A stretch of 64,000 bases of DNA from contig OZ251228.1 of NCBI GenBank assembly GCA_965240325.2, forward strand, positions 310,001 through 374,000. The letters are read 5' to 3'. Below are positions 55,490 to 64,000 of this stretch, one piece after another. Origin of the DNA: Rebecca billardiae RCC1528. Taxonomy: Eukaryota; Protista; Haptophyta. The position numbers and the translations under genes were made by a program. The notes below the pieces were generated by a model. The model was not told the origin of the DNA, made no database searches, and was given only the letters and a program-made list of their open reading frames with translations. Each line of letters starts with the position of its first letter. The stretch's first letter is position 1.

Positions 55490-55522
<33 letters not shown>
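55379..55522. repeat. Compound (TA)n microsatellite with GTGG interruptions
   Basis: Direct read. Confidence 0.97.
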
Positions 55523-55535: not shown

Positions 55536-58500
55536 CACCTCAAAGATGTGCGGGTGCCTTTTCCGGCCACGTTCCACGAGATTTTCTTAAAACTGCACTA
55601 GCAACCGACGGCCAATCAACGCCCGGCCTGCACCAGGGGCGGTGGAGGGCATGAATAGGTTTTTGAGCAACCGCCGAGCCTGGTTGAGTCGCTCCGTTCC
55701 GGCTGAGCGCCGGTCGAACGGCCCCTCGCGGTTTGTCGAAGTCATGGACGGAGCGGGGAGCTCCCGCCGGCCACCGCGCCGGAGCTCGTCACCGCCGCCA
55801 CGCGGGGAGGACGATTGCGGAATGTCGGCGTCATCTGGCGCGGCATCAATATCGGAATCGGAGACCATGTCGTCGTGCAGTGGCTGCAGAAGAACGGCAG
55901 GCCTTCGGAGCGCGCCGGGCTCGCGCAGGTGCGCCGCGTCGTCAAGAAGTCGTCGCGGGGTCAGTGACCCTCATGGTAAAGTGGTTCTACTTCGTGGAGG
56001 ACTTGCCTGGCAAGACGCGCACCGCAGACTACCACCCTGCGGAGGTCTACGAGCACGTCGGCAACTGGAAGGAGGAGGAGATCGAGGTCGAGACGGTGCA
56101 TGGCAAGGTGATGGTGTGGAAGAACCTTGCGGAGTTCATCGCGCGCGGGGGCGCACTGGACTTCTTCGTGAATGCATGGACCGCGTTCAAGCGCCCGAGG
56201 TGCGCCGCCCCGCCCGCGATCCCTCCCTGCGCGCGCATACCCGCGGCGCGCCAACACCGCGTGTCGTCGTCCGCCCCGTCGTCTGTGATGCCAGGCAGGG
56301 CGAGTCCGAGCCGCAGCCGTTCAAGGCCAAGCGCAACGTGCTGCATGTGGCGAACATGAATCTGACCGAGCCACCCGAGGAGGTCATCGCGCAGCTCCCG
56401 ACCGCCCGCATGCCATTCGAGTTCGGTGTCGGCCTGAAGGCCTGGAAGCAGCCGGACGGCGGCATCGTGCTGCCGACGACGACAGGGGCTGCGGAGGACG
56501 GGCAGCAGCGCGGCTACCCGCTGCGGCCGTGCTTGCTCGGGGAGGCGGACGAGCACGTGCTCGATCTCGGTACGATCGGATCCCGCTGCGCGCGCGCCGT
56601 GCCCGCTCCCCCCCGCCGCCCGTGTTGACGCGCGTCCTGCGCGCGTGCCCGCGCGCGCCGCGCAGGGCGCGATGAGATTGGCATCGCCGCGGACGCCGAT
56701 CTGGTTGCGGCGTGCGTCGAGTCCGAGCGCCGTGTCGCGGGCTGCCTCGCCAGCAGTAAGGTGTATCGCCACGTCACCATCGTCGCCATCGAGCACGGCG
56801 CGAAGCTGTACCGCCCGCCGGCGGAGGCTGTGCACAACCTCGTCGCGCGGTACCGTGAGTTCCTGTGGCGGGAGCCGATGCACATTCGCGTCCGCCAGCA
56901 GCAGCAGGCGGCGATCTTCGATCGGCTGCTCACGCGCGTCGTCGCGCACTGCCGAGGCTTGCACGCAGCCGAGCGCGCATCGGTCCAGGTCGATGCCACC
57001 GCGTACGATGCTGCCGTCATCGACCTCTTCGCCGAGGACCGCCTGGGCCGCTGGCTGCGCGGCCGGTACGAGCTCGAGCTCGCATCTCACGCGAGCTTGC
57101 CGCTCGCCCCCGGCTGGCCCTTCTTCTCGATCGCTCCGCTGAACGGCAACGCGTCGGACAACTACGCCGAGATCTTCTCTCCCGCCACGACGCTCGCCGA
57201 GAGCCCGCACCAGCTCGTCCTGTTCACCGACTTCCAGTCGGTCATCGGCCTGCGCTTCACCTGGCGTAAGTGGAAGGATGTCACAGCGACCGGCGGGACA
57301 ATCATCGGCGGCTCGCCGCCGCCGACCGCGGGCTACCATCCGAATAGTGGGCGGGGATGTACGTACGGCTGGTAGGCATGACGTAGTCAGTCACGGCTCA
57401 GCACTCCAGTCGCACTATCCCGCATTGGCGCCATATTCGTTCGTGATACTCGTCAGTCTTATTCGTCGGATGAGGCCCGCGCTCGCGGGCCGCGCGGCGG
57501 CGCGGGCCGCGCGGGCTGCGCGGGCCCGACGCGTGCCACCGCCACCGGCCACTGTGGCAGCGCGCGGCGGCGCGGGCCGGATACGGTCGTGCCAGGCTCC
57601 GGTTCGGGCGGGCGGCCGGCTTAGACCCCCCTGCAAGCCCGGCGACGCCACTGCGGGTCACGCTCAGGGACGGCGGCAGAGCCGGCCCACTGACTGGTCT
57701 CGCCGCCCGCGGGTGCGCAACCGTGACCGTCAGTTCCGCGCGGGCACCAGAACTGCGGAGCACGGCCGCGGCGGCGCGGCCGAGTCGCTGTTACTGGCTG
57801 CTCGCGATTGGGATGCAGCAGCTCTACCAGCGACCAGCCACTTGAAGCATGTACACACTCACCAAGCCTTGCCGCGCGGCAGTCACGTTTGCCCGCCACG
57901 CGTGGCCCGTGGCCGTGCCCGTGGGGCGACCGGCTCAGGCAGCGCAGCGGGGCGGCTCGCGCTCCCTGACTGTCGTTGCGAGCTAGCACTTCTGTGGTCT
58001 CCCTGCTTCCTCTCGAGACCTTGCCCGCTCCTTCAGACGTGCTCGCGCAGCACCCGTGTCGCGAAAGCTCTCGGGCTCGCGCTTGGATGGCGCATCGCAT
58101 TCGTGTCGGCTGCCCGCGTGCAGTACAGCCCACGCGAGGCGCAGCCACGGCCCCTTGTCGAGAGGCTCAGATACCCCTGGGATGGCCCAACGACCCCGCT
58201 GCCGCCGCGGCCACGGCGGGCGCGCGCCAACGCTCGCCTCCCCGAGTCGCCGCCCCGGCAGCCGGGGCGCGGCGGCCCCGGGCCGCCCGCAACCAGACCG
58301 GGCTCAGAACGCGTATTACCGGTTTGGCGGCCGTAGGTAGAGGGCCCACCCCTTGCCCTCGCGAGTCCAGGATTTGATGCAAGACCGCCAGACCAAGGGC
58401 CGTGGCCAGACGAGAGGATAGGGATTTCGTGCAAGACGGCGCCTAGTCGTGAGGAGCCTTGATTGAAGAAAAAGTTTAGTCAGTCGACTGACTAAACTCA

Positions 58501-58571
58501 TCTCCCCTACAAATGTTCAGGAGATCAAGGCTAGAAGCGTCCAGAAACGGCACCCGCACATCTTTGAGGTG
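55536..58571. mobile_element. Putative non-autonomous DNA transposon (3036 bp) with 31-bp terminal inverted repeats and a cargo gene
   Basis: 55536-55566 CACCTCAAAGATGTGCGGGTGCCTTTTCCGG matches the reverse complement of 58541-58571 at 29/31 positions. No target-site duplication is visible. Confidence 0.7.
55973..57375 (+). CDS. Orphan 403-aa protein inside the TIR element; exons 55973-56199, 56295-56569, 56666-57375
   Basis: Two host-style GT-AG introns join three frames into a stop-free 1212-nt CDS with host codon bias; no family recognised. Confidence 0.75.
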
Positions 58572-59689
58572 CAGGCTCTGGAGTCTCAAGCTCGATCATC
58601 ACGGGGGCGCGCGCTGCTCGCCGTTGCGCGCGCTCGCTGACGGCGAAGCCCGCGAAGCGCACCGGCGGCCGCCGTCCAGCCGTCGCCCCGGCCCGGCCCC
58701 GGCCAGCGCGCACGGGTATAGTCGTCAGTAGTGAGCAGGCGGCGGTACTATCCAAACTAGGTACACAGTGAACAGATGGACCTCAAAATGTGTACTTTAG
58801 AAGCCCGCCTCGAGCGGCCACGAAGGGCACAATGGCGGATTGCGGCGGCCCGCCGCCATCCCTCAGTGCCCGCCCATCAGGTGTCCATGACCGACGTCAC
58901 ACTCGATCTCGAGAGAGCAGACCAAGACGGCGAGGCGGGTGACACGACCCACTGCATCCCCGAACTCGGTCGAGAAGACGAAGCGGCGCTACAACGCGCG
59001 TGGCAGCAAGCTGCTGACGATGCCCGCGGTGAGCGGCTGTCATGCCACCTCGCACGCGCAGATGCGCGGCGTCCCGAAAACCTTCGGTCGATGTCTCGCG
59101 AAAGGGGACGAATGGGAGGGCGACACATGCGCGCATCCTCCCTTGAAGTTCCGATCGCTATCGACCGGCCAATCTCGCGCGATGTCCCCTGCTGCGCAAC
59201 CTCTCCGGCGCGCTCGCGCAGAGGTGATATGGTGCAGTTGCCGCAACTCAAGCTGAAGCACCAGCAGGAGGCGCCGAAGGCCGCGGCGGGTGACAGAACG
59301 CTGCCGGAGCAGTACCAGGTGCGATACGAGGCCGCGCCGTTCGCTCGGCAGTGCAGCTCTCTCTTCTCTTTCGTTGCGCGCCGGATCAATCTGAGGGTGG
59401 GCTCGTGGTGAGCAGCGCAGCTCGACACTGGCCAGTGCTCGCAGAGCACCAGATCCCGAGGATGGACAGCGGCGTGGCGGCGAAGCTGATGGCAGCGATC
59501 AGCGCCCCACCGGGCTACATCGTACCGCCGGGGTGAGCGTCGGGAGTGATGCGCTCTCTGATGTGGGCGATCGCGAGCGCGCATTCTGATGTGCGCTCGT
59601 GGATGCAGCTCGAGGCGGGGAGGGCCATCAGCTGGTGTGACCCTCAGCCGTGCCCTGCTGCGACAGGGGCGGGAGCTGATGGAGGATCC

Positions 59690-61012
59690 TGTCGCCGACG
59701 CAGTAAGCGCGCCGTTGAGCACCTCGGCCTGCAGGAGTCCGTGCTTCGTTCGGCATCATGGCGAGCAGCGCGCGGAATCTGGGCGCGACGAGCAGCGAGA
59801 TCGGATGCGCGCGTCCGGACGAGCCGATCATGTCTTTGACTTTCAGCCCTCCGCGGGCTCCCGTGCGCTTCGGGCAGGAGGCCAGTCTGAGCCCTCATCA
59901 TCAGTCGTCTGATGCCCTGCATGACGCTGCCATACTACTACGACACACGTACGCGTGAGTCACTGTGAGTCATATCGATGCGATCGTCGCACAGCAGTGG
60001 CGCTGCACGGCCGCGGAGCCCAGAGCTGACGATCAGTGTGGACCGAGCCGTCGGCAGACGCAGATTTGGACACGACGAGGTCGTAGTGCGCGCCGCGCGC
60101 GGCCAGGTACCGCCAGGGCCAGGGCCACGCCGGTGACGGCGGGCAGCAGAGGATGCAGCACGCGCGTGACGCCAACGTGCCGTGCGAGGGCTACGCCAAC
60201 GCTGCTCAGGCACCGCAGCAGCCGCAGCTCACGCGTGAGGACTTCTGCCGACTGTGGTTGGCGGCGGTGCGCGAACTCGTCGGCGGCGGCCGACGACCGC
60301 CGCGGAGGTGAAGGTGATGGTGCTTGCTGCGCTCAACGCCAGGTGCGCGTATGCGCGCGAGCTCAAGCGGTGGACGAGCACGGTCGCGTGCTACCCGCAC
60401 GTGGTCGTCACCATCGCCCCTCGCGCCATCATGCGACTCGGCAGCGCGCTGCACCGCGCGAGCACACAAGCGTCGGAGCACGACGGCAAGATCATCGGCA
60501 ACACGTTCCACGACCGCACGTGCCGGGCGGGCGGGCTGAGCTCGAACAGACGCGGCACGAGCATGCCGCGAGCTGGCCGCGTCGAGCAGGCCGCCAAGCA
60601 GGTGATCGTGGGCAAGATCATGAAGAAGCGCACCAACACCGTCGACAAGAACGGCCGGCTGCGACTGCTTGCAGCAAAGACGGTGCAGCCGGGCGCATCC
60701 AGTGGCAGCGGGCCTGCGAGCGAGGTGCGTCTGCGCGAGATCGTCTATGCTCGTCGCACCGCATCTCCACCTCCGCCATCTGACGCCTGCGCACCGCATG
60801 CGCGCGCGGCCGCCCGGTCGCGCGACGCACTGGCGATTGAGATGACATTCGCGCGTGTCGCGGGCAGTAACAGACGAAAAGACGAGGTGGCAGGGGCTGG
60901 TGAGCGGTGTCTGAAGCATGTACTGGGTGGTTGCGCACCTGCCAGTGCCCGTCCGCGCCGGCTCAGGGTTCTTACTAGGCCGCCGGCCCGCGTCGCGCCG
61001 GCGGCACCCTAA
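59690..61012 (+). pseudogene. Degenerate DDE transposase remnant, RAG1/Transib-like (may begin near 58880)
   Basis: Ordered motifs across frameshifts: VAD...HLGL..PCF, GQ...DALH, YPH...IMRLGSALHRASTQASEHDGKI. Confidence 0.45.
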
Positions 61013-61347
61013 AGTGGACATTTGGCCGCCATTCTGTTCACCGTGCGTCCGGCGAGTCACAGTACAAGTGAGAGTACTGCGCCACTGGAGCCCACGGTAC
61101 TCTACCGGTCGCATGCCACGTCTGACTGAGCCTCAGCTTCATCTTATGCCTTCTTCGCCCACCCCTAAAGGGCACTAGCCTCAGCTTCTTGCGCCAGCCG
61201 GCGTCAGAACATCGTCAGCCTCGTCAGGGGTTTCGTCGTCTGAATGAATAATATCAAGCGCATGCTCAGGCGACGAGCATCCCGTCGCCAAGCACATCCA
61301 TCCCGAGCCCCTTCACGCCTCCCTCGCCCACGATCACGCGCATCCGC

Positions 61348-61447
61348 NNNNNNNNNNNNNNNNNNNNNNNNNNNNNNNNNNNNNNNNNNNNNNNNNNNNN
61401 NNNNNNNNNNNNNNNNNNNNNNNNNNNNNNNNNNNNNNNNNNNNNNN
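61348..61447. other. Assembly gap (100 N)
   Basis: Run of exactly 100 N. Confidence 1.
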
Positions 61448-63962
61448 GCATCCGCTCACACGTGTGGTCGAGCCGGCCGTGCAGCTCGCGCCAGCCGCGC
61501 AGCACCTCCTCCCATGGCGCGTCTGCCTCGGGCCGCTCGAGCTCGAGGCCGGCGCCGAGCGCGCGCTGCTCGAGGAGGGAGTGAACCTGCATGGCGCGTT
61601 CGCACATGGCGCGGTTCATCTTGAGCGCCGCGCGCAGCTCCTCGCCCGACAGCTCGACGGGCGCGCCGCCTGCCGCAGCGGCCGGAGACGTCGTGGCAGC
61701 CGAAGGCTGGCGCTCGAGGGCGGCCGAGCCAGCTGGCTCGGCGGCATCGGCGGCCGCCCGCGCGGCCGCCACCTCGCTCGCCGCAGCGGCGAGTGTGTCC
61801 GGAGCGGCGCAGCTGAACGTGAGCTTCGCTGACGAGAGGCCGGCCGCCCCAGAGGCGGTGGTGCTCCGCACCGCGGGCTGTGCGCTCTGCGGCAGCGCTG
61901 GCTTGGCCTGCGCGCCCTCGGCCAATGGACCGCCCTTCGCCGCCCCGCCACCATACGGTCGCGCGGCGCCAGCCCCGGGGCTGCTGGGCGGCTGGCGTGT
62001 GCGCGCTGGGCCCAGCAGTGCGCTCACAAGCCTCCGCACCGAGAGCACCCGCTGCCCAAGGGCGCGCTTGCCGCGCGCGTGCTGCCCATGCGCCTGCGCT
62101 GCCAAGCCCTGCTGCTGCCCATCTGCGGGCGCAGCCTTGGCCGCAGCGGCGGTGGTGTCCGGCGCGGCCGCTGCGGACGCGCTCGCGGCGGCCGCGGCTG
62201 CCGCGGCGGCTGCCGCCGGCACCGCTGCGGCGGGCGCCGCGGCGGGCGCCTCCGATCTCGGCAGATCGGCGGCGCGCGCTCGAGACGTCCGCTTGGACGA
62301 CGTCCCCGACCTGCGGGCGGCGCGACCGTTGCGGGTCGGAGACCCGCGGCGGGAGCTGCCGCCCGCAGCATCGGCGGCAGCGACCTGGGCCCGCGTCATC
62401 TCGCGCATCGCTCGCTCGAGGGCGGAGCGCTGGGTCGTCGTGAGGGCCATGCCGCTCAACCGGCCGTCCCGCGCCTCGGCGATCGCCTCGTCGTGCGCGC
62501 GCGCGAGCAGGGCGCGCAGCGCGTCCAGCGTTGGCAGCAGCAGCCGCGCGCGCGTGATCGCTGCGCGCGCGCCACGCACAAAAGCGCCGACCACCGCGCG
62601 CACGGCCGCCGCCTCCTCGACGCTGGCGGCGCCGCCCTGCTCCGCGCCGTCGCCGAGCAGCCAGCCGAGCCCGCTCCCGCGCAGCACACCGCTCACCACC
62701 TCGGCCGTCGCCTCTGCCACGCCCCCTGCGCTCGCGCCGCCGGCGGCCGCGGCCGCTCCGAGCTCCAGCGCGTCGATCAACTGTGCGTAGCTCTGCCGGT
62801 CCGCTCTGCGCTTGAACGCGGGCAGCGCGCGCGCGACGGCCTGGTCGATGGCGACGAGCGGGCGCGACTCGTACGGCGTGAAGAGTAGGTTCTGTGTGTT
62901 GCCCCGCCAGCCCAGAGGTCCGACCGTCAGCCGATCCTCGTTCGCAATCGCCATGTCGAAAATGAGAAGCTCGCCAAGCTGCGCGCACACGCGCTCGCGC
63001 AGCGCGAGCGGCGCGGCGTGCTGCTCGCACGCGGCGGCGGCCTCGTCCGAGGCGAGGGAGACGCCGCCGCAGAACTCGAAGAGCAGGAACGCCTTCGACG
63101 AGCGCAGCTCGGACACCAGCAACTCTGCAGCGGTGCGCTCGTCGGCCGCCGCCGCGGCCGCGGCCGCGTGCGCGGGCGCACCGTCGCGCGCCGGCCCCGA
63201 GAGCCGCTCCGCCGCGGCCTCCACCCGGTTCCAGCCCTCCGAGCGTGCGCGGACGAGCTGCGCGTGCGGCGCGCGCACGCCGAGCGGCGCGCACAGCACG
63301 TTGGCCAGCAGCTCGCCCTCCGCCTCCGACGGCGACGCGTCGAACTTGAGGACTGCAAGCCGCTCAGGCAGAGGGCGCGCCCCCCACGCCAGACTGAAGT
63401 GACGCGCGCGCTCGCCGAAGGCGCTGAGGCCAGCGCCGCCGACCCCAGCGGGGAGGGCGGTGCCGCCGGAGCCCGAGAGCGCGCGCCCGCCGCCCGACTT
63501 CGCGCTCGGCGCGAAGCGCAGCATCCCGCCACCTCCGGTCCCGACGACGCTCGCGCGGCCGCCGGGCTTGCGCCCGGCGCCGCCTTTTGCAGCCGCGCTT
63601 GGTCCGGCCGGCGGCGGCGCGAAGAACGCAAAATAGACCGAGCCGCCCGAGTTGATCTGGAAGGTGACGGACGAGCTGACGGTGGAGCTGCGCGGGCGTC
63701 GGTCCGCCGCCGGCGTCGAGCTCGAGCTCGGCACGTCGCCGCCCGCCGCGACAATGGCGAGTGCCTCGGCCATCGCCGCCTCGTGAGGGCTGGCGCCCGC
63801 TGCCGACGGGCCGGGCTGCGTGCTCGTGAGCTCCTCGGTGCGCACGAGGCCGACGAGGTTCTCCCACGGCACCGGTGCGGCGGGGGGCGCGATGGGGAGC
63901 GCCGTTGCCGCGGCCACACGCGATTTGTGCGAGAGCGGCGCGCTCGCGAGCGCCACCGCCAT
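61448..63962 (-). CDS. Actin-fragmin kinase domain protein (PHS1-like atypical kinase); 3' end lost in the gap, 5' end may lie outside the window
   Basis: NSGGSVYFAFF, AVLKF, ELLAN.L...LGV.AP, FEFCGG, QLGELLIFDMAIANEDRL...LGWRGN.QNLL, LVAID. Confidence 0.82.
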
Positions 63963-64000
63963 CGATGCGCGCCGCCGCCCGCGCGAATGCGGGCCCACCC

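Follow-up and report, generated by a model that had tools for sequence, protein, structure and literature searches.

A young transposon family in the haptophyte Rebecca billardiae with terminal inverted repeats, duplication-free insertion and no recognisable transposase

The length of the target-site duplication (TSD) that accompanies the insertion of a DNA transposon is a property of the enzyme. The CACTA/Mirage/Chapaev (CMC) and Transib groups, which use known DDE transposases, make duplications of 2–5 bp, with 5, 4 and 3 bp for Transib, Chapaev and CACTA, respectively. The only transposons known to combine terminal inverted repeats (TIRs) with the absence of a TSD are the Spy elements, which are mobilized by a PIF-like DDE enzyme at AAATTT targets (PMC4122938). 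Spy belongs to the PHIS superfamily, has been described from invertebrates and inserts solely between AAA and TTT (Han et al. 2014; PMC4122938). Here we analyse a 3,036-bp TIR element in a 64,000-nucleotide stretch of the genome of the haptophyte alga Rebecca billardiae RCC1528 (GenBank assembly GCA_965240325.2, contig OZ251228.1, positions 310,001 to 374,000 of the forward strand), which we refer to as the window and number from its first letter.

Two further bodies of work offer points of comparison. DNA transposons of the haptophyte Tisochrysis lutea, namely Luffy, Ace and Shanks, generate TA, 8-bp and 7-bp duplications, respectively (PMC10138859). Chromatin-reader domains are often fused to transposon mobility enzymes, and the transposon-fused readers surveyed so far are mostly Chromo and PHD (10.1101/2021.11.30.470311). 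For the element analysed here, an original prediction made from the letters of the window alone offered two options: a gene-carrying non-autonomous element, or an element whose gene encodes a protein of an undescribed transposon family. We find this interpretation partly supported, the second option fitting best. We show that the element belongs to a very young mobile family that integrates between two adjacent base pairs, and we weigh whether the conserved protein encoded by the family may be what moves it.

A young mobile family that inserts without target duplication

The element occupies positions 55536–58571 of the window and carries its gene on the + strand. It is enclosed by two 31-nt TIRs, the left one at 55536–55566 (+ strand, beginning CACC) and the right one at 58541–58571 (− strand, ending GGTG), which are identical at 29 of 31 positions and provide CAC...GTG ends. 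These repeats had been described in the original prediction, as had the start of the element 13 bp downstream of a TA microsatellite (which ends at 55522), and both descriptions are accurate. Within the window there are exactly two occurrences of the terminal 23-mer, as against 0 expected from 100 shuffles.

In the 72-Mb, GC-rich (guanine- and cytosine-rich) genome, the same 23-mer occurs 37 times and a reversed control pattern 0 times. The search for other TIR pairs that had been proposed with the prediction yielded 18 correctly oriented pairs, spaced 3,029–3,037 bp apart (2,890 bp in one case). For 18 of the 19 left ends, a right end lies in the expected orientation at a distance of about 3,036 bp, a result that disposes of the possibility that the repeat is an abundant solo sequence in random orientation. 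The paired copies are more than 99.6% alike and their flanks are unrelated; at the window copy, similarity to the other copies stops immediately outside both tips. Fourteen copies, including the one in the window, form subfamily A and show 0–3 base differences from the window copy, and subfamily B consists of the other four, which have about 7 substitutions and three insertions or deletions (indels) in common. A 19th copy (contig C33, 368353-371440; locus L027), referred to below as the older copy, is 94.4% identical and has damaged tips. There is also a 584-bp fragment at 98% identity (G000:C31:403456-404232, in L030/L037), which runs from exon 2 to early exon 3 of the gene and has no TIRs. 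Because the 18 paired copies are distributed over 16 contigs in both orientations and the A copies are so nearly identical, the family is mobile and very young. It is a TIR element without a recognisable transposase and probably constitutes an unclassified DNA transposon of the cut-and-paste type.

The original prediction reported no TSD at the flanks of the window copy. This is confirmed for lengths of 1–10 bp, and the junctions of the 18 copies likewise show neither a recurrent direct repeat of 1–10 bp nor a common flank motif. The targets are GC-rich; in copy L022, for example, the element lies between CCCC and GGTG. This copy sits within another repeat that is present in more than 30 copies. 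In six paralogous empty sites, fetched as copies of that repeat, the last base of the L022 left flank joins the first base of its right flank directly, with 0 host bases gained or lost at the insertion and no alternative placement of the junctions possible. Because the six empty sites run straight through the insertion point, they provide direct evidence that integration leaves a 0-bp duplication and takes place between two adjacent base pairs, at targets without a shared motif. On account of this 0-bp duplication, and with no such transposase in the element, the link to Transib, Chapaev or CACTA that had been drawn from the CAC ends is not supported.

Insertion without gain or loss of bases is one of the observations that favour, over a DDE transposase, movement by a tyrosine or serine recombinase or by a single-strand (HUH or rolling-circle) mechanism. 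Such a mechanism would also suit the two tips, which would form a long perfect palindrome when joined, of the kind used by recombinases, and a perfect 24-bp palindrome at 58474–58497, 74 bp from the right tip, which is kept in 18/18 paired copies and in the older copy. However, the element contains no gene for a recombinase, Rep or helicase according to Pfam, and fold searches likewise uncovered no such protein. Moreover, targets and tips share no sequence, although a site-specific recombinase would require a crossover core common to both, and TIRs of this length (31 bp) and with these ends (CAC...GTG) are typical of cut-and-paste elements. We regard a mechanism of this type as improbable.

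Several individual sites have features of their own. The repeat that hosts L022 (L022:105-500, L049 and other copies in L038-L043) is 94–98% alike among copies, and at one tip a GC-rich hairpin (GGACCGCG TT CGCGGTCC) lies directly against a TA microsatellite. For the window copy there is no empty site, and the first 192 bp of its right flank are unique; another repeat family (12 copies, 91–100% identity) starts about 192 bp beyond the right tip, at 58764–59171 and beyond, near a CACAGTG motif. Copy L025 (G000:C35:498563-502452) has a mutated tip, CGCC, together with an in-frame 147-bp deletion within exon 1, and a 68/70-bp direct repeat adjoins it exactly at both tips; the other copies have no such repeat. 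Between L018/L048 (C29) and L022/L049 (C34), the element and at least 8,901 bp of one flank are duplicated at 99.99% identity. On C29 this duplicated stretch stops at a run of N, the opposite flanks diverge right at the tip, and the first base of the L018 tip is T, a pattern that could reflect a tip-adjacent rearrangement or an assembly join.

Structure, truncation and ownership of the gene

The gene model within the element comprises three exons, 403 codons and a stop, all on the + strand, and its coordinates and frame are as originally predicted. Exon 1 (55973–56199) begins with an ATG at 55973 and is followed by intron 1 (56200–56294), in which codon periodicity is lost and across which the frame changes. 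Exon 2 (56295–56569) forms the front of a conserved core and is separated by intron 2 (56570–56665) from exon 3 (56666–57375, including the stop codon), which contains a conserved core domain without an assigned fold. Both introns are bounded by GT and AG. Intron 2 is further supported because exons 2 and 3 are colinear in uninterrupted open reading frames (ORFs) from environmental sequences: exon 2 aligns to residues 4-65 of the environmental protein P0012 (E 3e-10) and to residues 22-86 of P0003 (E 9e-6), in each case just upstream of the exon 3 match. The remaining interior of about 1.2 kb, at 57376–58540 on the 3′ side of the gene, shows no codon periodicity on any phase, carries many indels relative to the older copy and is classed as non-coding. 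An Rfam scan of the element gave no match, returning microsatellite noise in the flank alone. Judged by codon periodicity, the element has no coding capacity beyond the gene.

Protein searches and fold predictions were run on single exons, and the joined (spliced) protein was not used as a query. When each exon and a family profile were used for six-frame searches of the genome, matches were confined to element copies and fragments. A genome-wide search with the 13-bp tip identified no other element, and hence no autonomous copy with the same tips of the kind that had been suggested as a target for searching; its four extra hits are attributable to chance, none extending beyond 13 bp. These results bear on the proposal of Pack-type capture, according to which a host gene was caught between the ends of a CACTA, Chapaev or Transib element. 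The CAC start of the repeats and the resemblance of the introns to those of host genes speak for it. Nevertheless, no host parent gene exists across the genome, and Pack-type gene capture is therefore not supported. There is also no 3-, 4- or 5-bp duplication, no autonomous partner shares the tips, and a relic of this gene is present in a related family. We consider such capture very improbable and close to refuted.

That related family, 2,425 bp in length with inverted repeats of 16 bp, comprises about 13 copies plus one older copy. Its CACC-type tips match those of the 3,036-bp family at 10 of the first 15 bases, and no TSD was present in the three copies examined. It bears a 430-bp stretch that is 74% identical to exon 3 and broken by frame-disrupting indels. 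We considered and rejected the possibility that this stretch represents a protein paralogue, because the match extends to every frame and to both strands, as expected of DNA-level similarity. Because the gene occurs solely within two related transposon families, one with an intact and one with a decayed version, we take it to be the family's own signature gene and not captured host DNA.

Comparison with the older copy shows that the gene of the young copies is a shortened version of a longer one. The older copy contains 40 bp with an ATG that are absent from the young copies, in which they would fall between positions 55756 and 55757, and it lacks a 2-bp insertion (CG at 55954-55955) that, in the young copies, breaks the frame with exon 1. 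As a result, it has a single open frame (L027:2248-2714) from the ATG through exon 1, which encodes about 155 residues as compared with 76. Its introns are still bounded by GT and AG, and exons 2 and 3 are open until a stop that costs the protein no more than its last nine residues, which are unconserved. In the window, the stranded 5′ half of ancestral exon 1 corresponds to 55757–55961 (+ strand, in the frame of 55536), as delimited by alignment to the older copy; with a third-position GC of 0.78-0.82, it retains the codon-position GC bias typical of coding DNA. The ancestral protein thus had about 475 residues, and the young copies have lost its start codon and first 77 residues. The 403-residue frame restarts at an internal methionine of the ancestral protein, the ATG at 55973, and the whole conserved core, of about 320 residues, stays open in the 14 A copies. 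The description of the gene as intact is thus correct for its open frame and incorrect for its front. The environmental relatives P0003 and P0012 are entirely without a front part, and for this reason we consider the exon 2–3 core of the A copies to be complete.

A common 8-bp insertion puts exon 3 of the four B copies out of frame after 15 residues. The four nonetheless occupy at least three sites; because they have moved in spite of the frameshift, subfamily B has been mobilized in trans.

The encoded protein and the source of mobility

Although the gene had been called an orphan, an exhaustive HMMER search with exon 3 recovered 10 environmental relatives. These are unnamed proteins of 207–373 residues with 30–40% identity, from JGI/IMG, Logan and ENA assemblies, encoded on contigs of 1.2–2.5 kb. 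Shared motifs include LFTDF...GLRF.RRKW and GW.FF. A word-based protein search returned only the window's own ORF, with no match for exon 1 and nothing new from the profile, and a search of the ESM Atlas with exon 3 gave no usable match. When the PDB was searched by sequence, both the family profile and exon 1 drew low-complexity ubiquitin noise alone. Pfam detected nothing above noise in any of the exon pieces, in 11 family members or in ancestral exon 1, which bears out the earlier statement that no transposase or recombinase motif is recognisable.

When supplied with the family alignment, AlphaFold2 modelled exon 3 with a predicted local distance difference test score (pLDDT) of 84.9 and a predicted template modelling score (pTM) of 0.82. 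Foldseek searches with this model gave no match in the PDB (best E ≥ 0.4) or among viral models in BFVD (best E ≥ 0.2), and a VIA fold search against 48,161 representative chains also gave none. The core encoded by exon 3 therefore has a confidently predicted fold that lacks a match among solved or viral structures, which is in itself no proof of a new fold. The front domain of the ancestral protein is possibly BAH-like, in which case exon 1 of the window model would be its rear half: motifs follow a BAH-like order, and the nearest ESM Atlas clusters are BAH (0.94).

We tentatively favour the view that the family's own conserved core protein is its mobility factor, to which we give slightly less than an even chance. 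The core protein would either carry out the cutting and joining itself or be indispensable to the enzyme that does. Its source would be the A copies or the older copy, which is immobile and combines damaged tips with an essentially complete open gene. The front domain, if BAH-like, might tether the core protein to chromatin, an arrangement with parallels in other transposons that pair a chromatin reader with their mobility enzyme.

Part of the support for this view would come from selection on the gene, for which the evidence is mixed. The young copies differ from the older one by 1 indel and 1.6% substitutions in the gene (1,403 bp of exons and introns), compared with 15 indels and 3.4% substitutions in the non-coding part (1,633 bp; Fisher p 0.0017). 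A number of observations weigh against the core protein as the mobility factor. The coding changes over the same comparison, 6 synonymous and 14 non-synonymous, are near neutral. Searches of Pfam, of PDB sequences and of folds all failed to link the protein to a nuclease, transposase or recombinase, and the only acidic residues of exon 3 kept across the family are E168 and D188, fewer than a DDE triad. The BAH-like reading of the front domain is weak as well. Alignment of this domain with three host BAH domains in hhalign placed the motifs in register but was weak (P 0.0047, probability 7.5%); the 155 residues of ancestral exon 1 gave no Pfam BAH match in hmmscan at E ≤ 10; PF01426, searched over the genome at E ≤ 10, matched three host genes and no element copy; and an AlphaFold2 model of ancestral exon 1 made without an alignment was unusable (pLDDT 36.6).

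Some of these observations are shared with an alternative in which the whole family is non-autonomous. An unrelated, blunt-inserting transposase would move it, and the gene would be accessory cargo; it could, for example, encode a chromatin-binding or anti-silencing factor outside cutting and joining. The lack of a catalytic signature or known fold in the gene product, the movement in trans of frameshifted B copies, the near-neutral ratio of synonymous to non-synonymous changes and the possibly BAH-like front domain are all in keeping with accessory cargo. The tips, however, are not shared by any other element in the genome. Furthermore, the genome contains only two genes of the PIF/Spy type, that is, with DDE_Tnp_4 (PF13359), at G000:C15:1907816-1908247 and G000:C7:714907-715338 (L054 and L055), and neither has such tips within 1.5 kb. 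Finally, the gene or its relic marks both related families, as a core gene would. We consider accessory cargo a serious possibility, but one that we incline to doubt. As for the two DDE_Tnp_4 (PIF/Harbinger-type) genes themselves, their open frames have 422 and 569 residues, and they are unrelated at the DNA level.

If the core protein is the mobility factor, a more specific proposal can be made, which we regard as unlikely at present: the core encoded by exons 2 and 3 would be a new type of transposase that cuts CACC tips, joins the element with a 0-bp stagger into any target and, in its full form, is guided by the BAH-like domain. It would define a new eukaryotic superfamily with marine environmental relatives. 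If a protein of unknown fold does cut and join in this way, it would represent both a new transposase type and a potential tool for scar-free insertion. If the core protein is not the enzyme, a blunt-inserting enzyme remains to be found in the alga. The family offers a natural set of variants, comprising a full gene in an immobile copy, a truncated gene in 14 mobile copies and a frameshifted gene in 4 copies that have moved, a set that makes it directly testable.

Relation to known transposon systems

The TIRs of the 3,036-bp family begin with CAC, as do those of the CMC and Transib groups. The family makes a 0-bp duplication, and its tip reads CACCTC, not CACTA or a heptamer of the CACNNTG type. 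Neither Pfam nor fold comparison gave a CMC-type DDE match in the gene, and there is no larger element with the same tips. For Transib, there is no RAG1-like match in the element by Pfam, PDB sequence or fold. A suspected RAG1/Transib-like relic outside the element, at 59690–61012, drew a blank in Pfam searches with three ORFs (58776–61012) and in a PDB-sequence search with the ORF at 60254–61012. Farther along the window, a masked run of N at about 61340–61450 lies within a minus-strand ORF (61266–63998) and appears as X in translations.

The family also differs from systems that do not use a DDE transposase. It is distinguished from Helitrons and other HUH elements by its 31-bp TIRs and by the absence of a Rep or helicase match (Pfam and fold). 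Like Cryptons, it makes no TSD, but it gives no match to a tyrosine recombinase and has TIRs, which are untypical of Cryptons. The arrangement of a possible BAH-like reader ahead of the element's own conserved protein, an assignment that is weak, recalls fusions of readers with transposases; the difference is that the surveyed readers are mostly of other types and that the partner domain here is no known transposase.

Among haptophyte transposons, no Tisochrysis lutea family is 3,036 bp long with 31-bp repeats and no duplication. Those families nevertheless resemble the one described here in being young, active TIR elements (2.5–6.8 kb) of a GC-rich haptophyte, with proteins that are often missed by Pfam.

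In its mode of insertion, the family parallels Spy: both are eukaryotic TIR elements that insert precisely and without a TSD. They differ in target, because those of the 3,036-bp family have no shared motif and are not AAATTT; in the encoded protein, because Pfam finds no DDE_Tnp_4 in any exon here, whereas Spy has a PIF/IS5-like DDE; and in host, an alga here as opposed to invertebrates. A second, unrelated and target-indifferent family that inserts without duplication would mean that blunt integration arose more than once.

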